Positions 37,301 to 45,934 of a stretch of DNA of 64,000 nucleotides are shown here, piece after piece. The DNA lies in assembly GCF_006345805.1 (NCBI RefSeq), contig NC_043013.1, forward strand, positions 23,684,001 through 23,748,000, in the 5' to 3' direction. A model generated the notes under the pieces. It was given only the letters and a program-made list of their open reading frames with translations. It had not been told where the DNA came from and searched no databases. Positions within the stretch are counted from its first letter, which is position 1. Every line of letters starts with the position of its first letter. The stretch is from Octopus sinensis (Eukaryota). The position numbers were made by a program, and so were the translations under genes.

Positions 37301-40300
37301 GTGTATGTGTGTGTATGTGTGTGTGTATGTGTGCGTATGTGTGTCTATGTGTGTGTGAGTGCAAATATTATGCTTCTGATCGTTATTGGAAAATGCTTCC
37401 CCTCAGCTGTATTTTTAATATTCAAATTACACATAAAGATGGGACCTTCTACTCGTTAGAATCAAGACAGTCTTTATCGTATTAAATCTCCAGTTACTGT
37501 TTCAATAGACAAAGATGCTTAATGGTTGTTGATCATCGTTTCAACTTGATCACATGAAAGGTCATTATGTTGTTTCTCACATTATAATTCACACACTGTC
37601 TACCTTTCTTGTCAAACTCCGCAGCCTTATTCACAACAGATGCAGTAGTGTCTTTTAAGCCAGATTATACTCTATGTCTATTTCTTTCTAGGTTCTTCCA
37701 GCTGCTCAACATATTCATTTGTAAACCATTCTTAATTCAATTACCTACTCACACCCAAACTAACTCGGTAAATCTAATAAAAACTGTTTTTCATTGCAGC
37801 CCTGTTTCAATGACAGTAGCAATTACTTCGAACTGGTGAAACAACGAGCTTCTGAAGTATGCACCATGTTACTACAGTATGGTTACCTTGATTCCAAGAA
37901 CTTTAGTTCCAATGGCAGAACGTTAGCCAGTCCAAACGGAAGTACTTAATTCTTTAGCAGTAACATATTTCTTGCACTCTTCGTAACCATGTGACCGTAG
38001 TCATTACATTCAACTGTTTATGTGTCACGCTGAGATTTATTTCTTCTGCGTTTCTGTCAGAAGACAATGCTTTGTTGAAATATGTGTGTGTGTGTGTATA
38101 CAACAACAACAACAACAACAACAACAAAAACAAAAACAATAATAATAATATACTCCGATTTAAAGTGACATTTATCTAAACAATTGACTGAAAAATGATG
38201 AGCTAACTCCGACAAAAACCGAACCCACATATCAACGCTAACACGGCTGCTTGCGCATCCGATTGAGCCAGAACACTCACCCACAAATTTCAGTCAAATT
38301 TTATATATAGATACTTAAACTGTCTAGTACTACATATAAAATTTTTGTAAATAAACCTGAAGGCTTGATAAGTCACGGAGAAAAAGCAACTGCTAAAGTC
38401 TTTTATACAATAATAACTATATAATAATATATCATAATAAATAGATAAATAAATAAATAAATATATATATATATATATAGATAAGAAAGTTGGTTTGTGA
38501 AAGCACGTGGGTGAATATATAAAAAATAGTAAAGAGTGAAAAAACGACAGAAGGCTTAAATGTTAGAAAATATATATATTTGCGTCAATATGTCTGAAGA
38601 ATATTAGAAAAATTTTTTCTCTTATAATGACAAAAATTTTGTCATAAGAGAAAAAAAATTTTTTTTTAAAAATTTTCTAATATTCTTCAGACATATTGAC
38701 GCAAATATATATATTTTCTAACATTTAAGCCTTCTGTCGTTTTTTCACTCTTTACTATTTATATATATATATATATATATATATATCATAATAAATATAT
38801 ATACACCGAATTAAAGCGATATTTACGTAAACAATACAGTTTAAGTATGTATCTATATATAAAATTTGACTGAAATTTATGGGTGTGTTCTGGCTCAGTC
38901 GGACGCACAAGGTACCGTGTTAGCGTTGATATGTGGGTTCGATTCCAGTCGGAGTTGCTCATCATTTTTCAGTCAATTGTTTAGATAAATGTCGCTTTAA
39001 ATCGGAGTATGCATAATATTATTATTATTATGGTATATTATTATATACACTGAATCGCGAAAGAAACGCGATTTTTTCAAATGTCATATATATATAAGAT
39101 GTATACTCATTGATGTGAAAAGCCACAGTGTGTTGAAAGAGACGTGTGAGTCGGACGTTGGATCTTTGGGTGTGGAAGTAGTGATTGATTCGCTGCCTCC
39201 AGTCATTGACTACACTGTGTTGAACAAACTTGAGGTCGTATGTTGACTGTTTTCTTTAAAAAAAAATGTGTTTTAAGAGAAAAAGAGACGCAAAATATAA
39301 ACGTTTATTTTTTTTTCAAGAGTTCAGTGAGGCCACTTTGGATGTGGGACTTGAGTGGCCGTCATTTCACCTTTCATTTTTTTCACATTTCATCGTTTTT
39401 CGTTCGTTCCCCCCCACACACACACTTTGTGTTTTTATCTTTCATTGTGTTGTCCCCTCTGTATTTGGAACCTATGTGGTTAGTAAAGAATAAATTGGTA
39501 ATTTGAACGCATCAGGTATGACCCGATTGTCAGCAGCGCAGAGAAAGCAAACTATCGGCCGATTGCAAGCAGGGCAGCGTGACCTGGTTGTTGGGAAAGC
39601 TTACAATGTCCACGTGGTCAAAATGCATCCAAGAAATTGACTTTATCAGATTTATCAAAATTTATTTCTGACATAAGGAAATTAAAACATATTTCACAGT
39701 CACACACATCTCACGTTTCTTTTGCGGTTCAGTGTAGTTATTATTGTATAAAAGACTTTAGTAGTCGCTTTTCTCCGTAACTTATCAAACCTCCGGGTTT
39801 GTTTATATATGTATGTATGTATGCATGTATGTATGTATGTATGTATGTATGTATGTATGTATGTATGTATGTATGTATGTATGTATGTATAATTATTCAA
39901 CTCCCACTCGTAATACCCTAAAACATAGCAAAAAGTTATTGCTTAGTTGATATCTTTTAATAAAACCAGCAATAAATATTTTGTTTACTTTACACCAACT
40001 AAGCAAACACTTCTGTTCCTTAAACTAAATTTCATTACGAATGATACTTCTGTTTTATGTTTTGTAAATTAAGTTTATCATTTTAGATTGCGTTTCAGTC
40101 GTCTGTTAAACCATTTCAATCCAATTTTACAAAGGTTAAAAATCTGTTCTTACCTCATTGCTGTAATACTCTTTACAGACCAGACGCAGACGACGGTTTC
40201 ACTTGTGCCAATAAGGATTACAGGACATACACAATAACATAACACGTATAGAAGTTTTGAATTTCTAACTTACTTAAATAATACTTTCACTACGTAAGCC

Positions 40301-45934: not shown

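Follow-up and report, generated by a model that had tools for sequence, protein, structure and literature searches.

Two convergent octopus genes for predicted ADAMTS-type proteases with a pair of PAN modules that probably lies inside the cysteine-rich CA subdomain

Are the two PAN modules encoded in an ADAMTS-like gene of Octopus sinensis appended to the other domains of the protein, or are they inserted into one of them? The question is raised by a stretch of 64,000 nucleotides (nt) of the RefSeq assembly GCF_006345805.1 (contig NC_043013.1, positions 23,684,001 to 23,748,000, forward strand), which was analysed as a whole and is called the window below. In our estimate the probability is roughly 0.75 that the window holds two convergent paralogues, gene 1 on the plus strand and gene 2 on the minus strand, each encoding a predicted secreted reprolysin-type (M12B) zinc metalloprotease with a PAN pair inside CA, the cysteine-rich subdomain that follows the central TSR (thrombospondin type 1 repeat). 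The predicted domain order is propeptide, catalytic domain, D* domain, one TSR, CA with the PAN pair inside, and then the end of the protein. An earlier reading of the letters of the window (the original prediction) had proposed such an insertion for gene 1, for which the relevant features are:

4277-45934 (+): whole coding span of gene 1, with 20 coding exons and 812 amino acids (aa), assigned by identity to XP_029646979.1
4277-4351 (+): coding exon 1, with the start codon and a hydrophobic, signal-peptide-like N-terminus (gene model)
16251-16376 (+): coding exon 9, catalytic domain, ending in HELAH, the first half of the zinc motif (Pfam Reprolysin on the model)
20604-20732 (+): coding exon 10, rest of the zinc motif HELAHNLGIPHD and the Met-turn region (model translation)
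33234-33397 (+): coding exon 14, in which the D* domain ends and the central TSR begins (Pfam TSP_1; phmmer against ADAMTS13 3GHM)
35979-36039 (+): coding exon 15, second part of the TSR (model; phmmer against ADAMTS13)
37800-37941 (+): coding exon 16, 142 nt, phase 0 to 1, last TSR Cys, followed by the putative N-terminal part of CA, where C570 is the sole invariant Cys
40316-40386 (+): intron stretch directly upstream of PAN1, duplicated along with the exon, with its copy at 42802-42872 (300-nt direct repeat)
40387-40620 (+): coding exon 17, 234 nt, phase 1-1, PAN module 1 with four Cys (Pfam PAN_1)
42873-43106 (+): coding exon 18, 234 nt, phase 1-1, PAN module 2 with four Cys, a copy of the PAN1 type
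44584-44735 (+): coding exon 19, 152 nt, phase 1 to 0, putative C-terminal part of CA with CxxxC, the position of the hypervariable region (HVR), DGSPC and CIRGSC (hhalign)
45905-45934 (+): coding exon 20, 30 nt, nine-residue tail KFENQTFSG and stop codon

The gene 1 model was first assembled from open segments, splice sites and phases, and was later completed using relatives. Its spliced translation, derived from the 20 coding exons, is residue-for-residue the O. sinensis RefSeq protein XP_029646979.1 (P0163, 812 aa), which carries the name "ADAMTS 1". The locus of this protein (GCA_006345805.1 CM016875.1, approximately 23.69 Mb) spans 41,658 nt, the same as the span in the window. Since model and RefSeq protein agree exactly, the three junctions put forward in the original prediction (37941 to 40387, 40620 to 42873 and 43106 to 44584) are those of RefSeq as well. 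Two of its details have to be corrected: the protein counts 812 instead of 824 aa, and the exons that were numbered 17 to 20 are coding exons 16 to 19, followed by the 30-nt terminal exon at 45905-45934. All borders of exons 16-19 are of the AG/GT type, and joined together the four exons form a single open frame.

The protein upstream of these exons has the composition of an ADAMTS-type protease. Pfam Reprolysin matches the gene 1 model above the cut-off (E 1.4e-14), and the zinc motif (HELAHNLGIPHD) is intact, conforms to HExxHxxGxxHD and is followed by ...SSGLMGS at the Met-turn. According to phmmer the D* domain comes directly after the catalytic domain (Pfam ADAMTS_CR_2 gives E 0.09, under the cut-off); D* and TSR together align with ADAMTS13 (3GHM, E 6e-17) and ADAMTS5 (2RJQ, E 3e-13). 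The central TSR contains six Cys and is recognised by Pfam TSP_1 with an E of 1.5e-9 (38 bits against a cut-off of 21.6).

Exons 17 and 18 are, by their coordinates, AG/GT borders, phases and Pfam PAN_1 matches, two symmetric phase 1-1 exons that each encode a four-Cys PAN module, exactly as had been predicted. The pair scores 71-75 bits against PAN_1 (PF00024; E 3e-21) and a single exon still reaches 43 bits, at a gathering cut-off of 21.4 bits. Four Cys per module are found in all lineages described below. The third disulfide, which links the N and C termini in the six-Cys apple subtype of factor XI and prekallikrein, is absent from the octopus modules. Length and phase are shared by all four PAN exons of the window (234 nt, phase 1-1), in keeping with the exon-shuffling rule.

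The answer to our question depends mostly on exons 16 and 19. When the PAN pair is excised, the TSR and CA of the family align with the TSR and CA of canonical ADAMTS proteins with an hhalign probability of 99.7% over 140 columns, covering both halves and running across the excised junction. The canonical alignment used here had three rows, namely ADAMTS13, a termite ADAMTS-3 and a wasp ADAMTS. For CA alone hhalign gives 90%, over ...PDGSPC...WRCIRGSC against CxxxC...DGTxC...CxxGxC, and exon 16 aligns with ADAMTS13 ...CEKTQLEFMSQQC. A TSR-inclusive profile compared with the PDB using HMMER places CA co-linearly with ADAMTS13 3GHM and in the same register as hhalign, at a non-significant score. 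Parts of the parent domain can be recognised, in their proper order, on both sides of the insert.

The cysteines provide a second line of evidence. In all four family members the invariant Cys number six in the TSR, one before the insert, eight in the PAN pair and five after the insert, and in all four the lone CA Cys is 26 residues away from the insert. Because the five downstream Cys are odd in number, the lone upstream Cys is their natural sixth partner, which matches the six-Cys CA subdomain. C570 would then pair with the second Cys of C760xxxC764, resulting in a disulfide that spans the insert. C570-C764 of gene 1 would be the equivalent of C450-C487 of ADAMTS13, a disulfide of the 3GHM structure. 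The distance from the first CA Cys to CxxxC, with the PAN modules removed, is approximately 33 residues against 32 in ADAMTS13. The CA halves may thereby close into one fold from which the PAN pair is looped out; the N and C termini of the PAN fold are neighbouring, which suits a looped-out insert. As to the original claim that the flanking exons are two halves of one CA, both the 99.7% match and the 1+5 invariant Cys argue in its favour, the assignment of these Cys to a CA subdomain being based on profile-profile comparison.

Where exactly does the insert enter? Sequence comparison places the two PAN modules firmly between the N-terminal helix that carries the first CA Cys and the CxxxC motif. 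In the hhalign output the octopus CxxxC corresponds to C483-C487 of ADAMTS13, CPQNGI of exon 19 to S477-L482 and the end of exon 16 to about Y468-H469. The insert thus ends 7 residues before the Cys equivalent to C483. The PAN pair replaces or enters ADAMTS13 residues ~469-477, spanning G471-V474, P475 and H476/S477, with a register that is of low confidence inside the loop itself. The placement as such is supported by the CxxxC anchor seven residues away, and by the indels that the canonical alignment itself has at that column. In the ADAM_CR fold this is the position of the variable loop (V-loop), which is located between the first two strands and is short in the D* and CA domains of ADAMTS proteins (Takeda 2016, PMC4885070). 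The V-loop of the ADAMTS13 CA consists of H476/S477/Q478 with G471-V474 as its base, and together with R488 of the HVR it forms exosite 2 (PMC4885070). Our mapping agrees with the V-loop position of the original prediction, and we consider it quite probable from these comparisons that the two PAN modules are truly nested in CA at the V-loop.

A tblastn search with the PAN peptide of the window revealed two further PAN exons on the minus strand, and with them a convergent paralogue (gene 2) that had not been part of the original prediction. Over the portion inside the window gene 2 is identical to XP_029646989.1 (P0167, 817 aa); its upstream exons, including the catalytic ones, lie beyond the window. 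The two genes are arranged tail to tail, with 2.3 kb between the stop codons. The gene 2 features are:

62167-62271 (-): D* exon, 105 nt (comparison with gene 1 and XP_029646989.1)
56931-57987 (-): two TSR exons, at 57987-57824 and 56991-56931 (comparison with gene 1)
55782-55923 (-): exon of the putative N-terminal part of CA, 142 nt (comparison with gene 1)
54631-54864 (-): PAN A exon, 234 nt, phase 1-1 (53% amino-acid identity to PAN1)
52146-52379 (-): PAN B exon, 234 nt, phase 1-1 (43% amino-acid identity to PAN1 and PAN2)
50237-50388 (-): exon of the putative C-terminal part of CA, 152 nt (Pfam Adt-1 E 1.6e-4 on P0167)
48248-48280 (-): terminal exon, NFGTKGYANV and stop codon (located from the RefSeq protein)

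The seven exons that genes 1 and 2 have in common show equal lengths (105/164/61/142/234/234/152 nt), equal phases and canonical splice sites. The proteins share 44% identity and no similarity is left in the introns. Beyond the C-terminal CA exon, a tblastx comparison of the two genes finds no conserved exon, and the short tails were located from the RefSeq proteins alone. For the PAN exons the proportion of synonymous differences between the genes (pS) is 0.80-0.86, which means saturation, and that of nonsynonymous differences (pN) is 0.39-0.40. Saturated synonymous sites together with a lower pN indicate that, during a long period of divergence, the PAN exons have retained both their coding character and their position.

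To find further relatives we used several protein searches. A word-indexed search with the 254-aa peptide of the four exons gave no match, and a search with a rough 447-aa model returned distant ADAMTS and TSR proteins only, none of them with PAN. An HMMER scan with the PAN1 exon against 1.84 billion representative proteins yielded 342 matches at E <= 0.001. Among the best 150 of these 342, three clusters alone join this PAN to an ADAMTS context. The first (P0013) is the gene 1 orthologue of O. bimaculoides, XP_014774988.1, with 94% identity to the protein of the window; the second (P0015) represents gene 2; and the third (P0017) belongs to a third lineage, for which a full-length protein is available (P0168, 816 aa, three near-identical members). 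The third lineage comes from the Logan assemblies of SRR25158146 and SRR27666061 and is 39-45% identical to both octopus genes. Its contigs L001 (1022 nt) and L002 (2853 nt, with the full 816-aa open reading frame) run in one frame through TSR, N-terminal CA, PAN, PAN, C-terminal CA and tail. In the octopus genome introns of 1.5-2.5 kb lie between these parts, and the contigs therefore represent spliced cDNA. The arrangement is the same in O. bimaculoides and O. vulgaris (CAI9735287.1).

Comparison of gene 1 between O. sinensis and O. bimaculoides gives a ratio of nonsynonymous to synonymous divergence (omega) of 0.24 over the full length of the gene; the two PAN exons have an omega of 0.22, and no exon contains an indel. 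Judged by these ratios, the PAN exons are under purifying selection. The N-terminal CA exon (exon 16) is the most conserved exon of gene 1, with 100% nucleotide identity between the two species. The C-terminal CA exon at 44584-44735, on the other hand, is the fastest: its nucleotide identity of 88.8% is below that of the flanking intron, and its synonymous (dS) and nonsynonymous (dN) divergence are 0.29 and 0.08. Several of the changes are found just after CxxxC, at the HVR position of the ADAM_CR fold. We regard it as almost certain that the PAN exons and the exons on either side of them are real and included in the product.

A number of results weigh against a nested PAN pair. In the octopus proteins Pfam ADAMTS_CR_3 is not detected. 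Adt-1, which sits within ADAMTS_CR_3 in canonical ADAMTS proteins, matches the C-terminal CA exon weakly and below the gathering score (E 0.003-0.012 for gene 1, 1.6e-4 for gene 2). A profile of CA only, with the PAN modules removed, retrieves no ADAMTS chain from the PDB. The AlphaFold2 model of the O. bimaculoides orthologue P0013, based on an alignment of 7 sequences, has a mean confidence score (pLDDT) of 46, with values of 75-90 for the PAN modules and <50 for both CA parts. The uncertain register within the loop is to be added here, as is the fact that residues 452-479 in the ADAMTS13 row of the canonical alignment were filled in by hand; this stretch fits, by its length of 28 and its numbering, the tool output to its left and right as well as the residue numbers of the review (PMC4885070). 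Finally, some gene models deviate. The 734-aa UniProt model A0A0L8H6J5 of O. bimaculoides (P0164) has one PAN exon, so exon use may vary. Of the models for O. bimaculoides gene 2 (P0015, P0165, P0166), the older RefSeq one skips the N-terminal CA exon and reads through the last donor, and in the newer annotation the gene is divided in two, giving a protease of 569 aa and a PAN protein of 295 aa. The N-terminal CA exon is included in the gene 2 model of O. sinensis.

Some profile and structure results of this list speak for modules that were appended instead of inserted, with exon 16 as a helical linker, exon 19 as an independent small Cys-rich knot, and a linear order of TSR, linker, PAN, PAN and knot. 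The missing ADAMTS_CR_3, the non-significant CA-only search of the PDB and the AlphaFold2 model that is uninformative in the CA region can be read in this way, and so can the local CA-only hhalign match, which is restricted to the C-terminal half. Nonetheless, an independent knot would have an odd number of five invariant Cys, while the sole unpartnered invariant Cys nearby is found in exon 16; the alignment to the canonical CA, once anchored on the TSR, spans both halves; the segment between the first Cys and CxxxC has nearly the ADAMTS13 length when PAN is left out; and the supposed linker is the most conserved exon of the gene. We therefore consider a linear arrangement unlikely.

Another explanation is that the PAN exons are optional cassettes: the main product would be a plain protease with an intact CA, and the PAN exons would occur in minor or tissue-specific isoforms or in a nested transcript. 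Both exons are symmetric (phase 1-1), which means that skipping one or both preserves the frame, and the one-PAN model of O. bimaculoides as well as the current RefSeq division of its gene 2 fit this explanation. However, both PAN exons are present in the RefSeq models of the two O. sinensis genes, in O. bimaculoides gene 1 and in the O. vulgaris model, as well as in three full-length, mutually independent transcript contigs from the third lineage. Also, neither start nor stop codons are found within the PAN exons, whose constraint is as strong as that on the rest of the gene. Cassettes of this kind are quite improbable; a separate nested gene was rejected because start and stop codons are missing from the PAN exons and the phases are conserved. 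An assembly artefact or a chance open reading frame, which introns full of microsatellites and transposon fragments might suggest, can be dismissed given that three genome assemblies, two paralogues and transcript contigs share the arrangement, with conserved exon lengths and phases and a PAN_1 E of ~1e-20.

The history of the PAN pair can be partly reconstructed from the modules themselves. Each PAN exon of gene 1 forms, together with 71 nt of upstream intron, one copy of a 300-nt direct repeat with 89-90% identity and a spacing of 2486 nt. PAN2 is 83% identical to PAN1 at the amino-acid level (dS 0.25, omega 0.38), and it is nearer to the first-position than to the second-position PANs of the other lineages. 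Between the three lineages the first-position PANs share 46-53% identity, and between gene 2 and the third lineage the second-position PANs share 36%. From this distinct pattern of similarity for the first and second position it follows that the ancestor already had two distinct PANs. The second PAN of gene 1 has evidently been overwritten by a copy of the first, along with the 71 nt of intron. This overwriting predates the split of O. sinensis and O. bimaculoides, because dS is 0.25 between the copies against ~0.10 between the species. The most likely origin would be a single PAN exon that was shuffled into a phase-1 intron and then tandemly duplicated; insertion and duplication would have preceded the divergence of the two paralogues and the third lineage, and the replacement of PAN2 in gene 1 would have come later. 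Outside the family, the nearest PAN modules among the matches listed are those of octopus multi-PAN proteins such as LOC118764742, which has 22 PAN modules. The insertion site appears to evolve quickly, given that no exon of the gene changes faster than the adjacent HVR exon and that a copy of PAN1 has replaced PAN2 in one of the paralogues.

Beyond the original prediction we also observed that the proteins lack the CB subdomain and the spacer. The proteins of genes 1 and 2 stop 9-10 residues after CA. A search for the CB motif (GCD...CGVCGG) downstream on either strand did not find it and gave microsatellite translations only, and Pfam ADAMTS_spacer1 has no match in P0163, P0167 and P0168 but does match P0006 and P0009, the canonical controls. 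An ADAMTS is defined by its M, D, T1, C and S domains (PMC4885070). Lacking CB and spacer, the octopus proteins are strictly not complete ADAMTS proteins, and they are better described as truncated ADAMTS-type proteases. With CB and spacer missing, the PAN pair may instead be what directs the protease to its targets, as an exosite that binds proteins or glycans. We put forward this role tentatively. For the wider proposal the chances seem evenly balanced: a cephalopod protease family may have lost its CB-spacer exosite and replaced it by two shuffled PAN modules nested in the V-loop of CA, with a disulfide that spans the insert, which would amount to a natural re-targeting.

How does this compare to known systems? 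The CA of ADAMTS13 (3GHM) has, like its putative octopus counterpart, an ADAM_CR fold directly after the central TSR with the pattern C...CxxxC...DGxxC...CxxGxC. The octopus insert maps to the V-loop and its base, which in ADAMTS13 bind von Willebrand factor (VWF). The ADAMTS13 V-loop is a few residues long, whereas its octopus counterpart would consist of two independent PAN modules (~156 aa), and where the octopus proteins end, CB, a spacer, more TSRs and CUB domains still follow in ADAMTS13. Proteases and PAN modules are joined in one polypeptide in other cases too, for example in an astacin-ShK-PAN-discoidin protein (P0064) and in a bacterial StcE-like protease with five PANs (P0024). Among vertebrate proteins, plasma prekallikrein, factor XI, plasminogen and HGF have appended PAN or apple domains. 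In all of these examples the PAN modules precede or follow the other domains in a linear string, whereas those of octopus are probably nested inside one; the vertebrate apple domains moreover contain six Cys and the octopus modules four. Domain insertion, as opposed to end-to-end appending, is uncommon among exon-shuffled extracellular mosaic proteins. A V-loop of larger size is known from the group-A ADAM_CR domains (the Ch subdomain of P-III snake venom metalloproteinases and most ADAMs), which have a 27-residue insertion at this position (PMC4885070). This expansion indicates that the site tolerates extra structure. It is made up of a helix and two hairpins and is part of the same domain, whereas the octopus insert consists of autonomous shuffled modules on their own exons.

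The original prediction had stated that this architecture was not known from characterised ADAMTS proteins. This holds insofar as we found, in the literature searched, no description of ADAMTS proteins with PAN or apple modules (including those of molluscs, octopus or cephalopods) and no described case of a domain insertion within the superfamily of ADAM, ADAMTS and snake venom metalloproteinases. The sequences, however, had already been present as automatic predictions in RefSeq and UniProt: XP_029646979.1, XP_029646989.1, XP_014774988.1 and CAI9735287.1 are the same genes or their orthologues, under the automatic names ADAMTS 1, 7-like or 13. Because CA remains below the Pfam thresholds, their predicted domain lists read Reprolysin, TSP_1, PAN_1, and the probable nesting stays hidden. 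What is new is the recognition of the probably nested architecture in sequences that are already public. More generally, profile-based domain lists can conceal nesting when the parent domain scores under the threshold.

The relevance of a nested PAN pair would lie in its position: of the ADAM_CR loops it would occupy the one for which both variation in length and a role as substrate exosite are known, and its presence goes together with the loss of the spacer. As such the family may serve as a natural experiment on how ancillary domains set the specificity of a metalloprotease, and as a template for exosite engineering. The scope so far comprises the octopus genes and one transcript lineage.

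Some further observations concern the family members. The zinc motif of gene 2 (P0167) and the third lineage (P0168), which are putative proteases, reads HEIAHGIDIPHD, with Asp in place of the conserved Gly that gene 1 retains. No canonical furin site (RxK/RR) is evident in either paralogue at the expected boundary of propeptide and catalytic domain, which in gene 1 falls around residues ~195-200 (QPKER|LSIEM; exon 12441-12598). In gene 1 of O. sinensis and O. vulgaris the C-terminal CA exon carries at its start a seventh, additional Cys (Cys754, 44587-44589, DCPQNG), which makes the Cys count odd. We rejected this residue as part of the fold, since O. bimaculoides has Phe instead and the other lineages lack it. 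The O. vulgaris model CAI9735287.1 (P0162) is without the 35-aa D* exon 13; this model and the one-PAN model of O. bimaculoides could be due to alternative splicing or to annotation gaps. Contig L001 (SRR25158146) has an in-frame TGA within the TSR at ~97-105 (YSR*KCDNP), for which faulty assembly, a pseudogene allele or recoding through RNA editing could account.

The remaining features of the window are repeats and mobile elements. Two remnants of mariner-type transposases were recognised by Pfam Transposase_1: one at 48825-49892 (+; E 5e-24), towards the 3' end of gene 2 and upstream of the terminal exon, and one at 53340-54311 (+; E 3e-23), in the intron that separates PAN A from PAN B. 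Another gene 2 intron contains a gag-like open reading frame at 58289-59356 (-), with a weak CCHC zinc-knuckle match (20.4 bits against a Pfam cut-off of 20.8). Fragments of a reverse transcriptase (RVT_1) are found at 25143-26400 (+) in the 9.4-kb intron 13 of gene 1. The introns of this gene also include a 365-nt tandem duplicate with identical open segments (direct repeat 33910-34098 / 34275-34463) and a unit of ~1 kb in two copies approximately 3 kb apart (28178-29250 / 31234-32385). The short region between the two stop codons has inverted-repeat (palindromic) stretches at 45331-45519 and 47826-48005, which appear as self-matches in tblastx.

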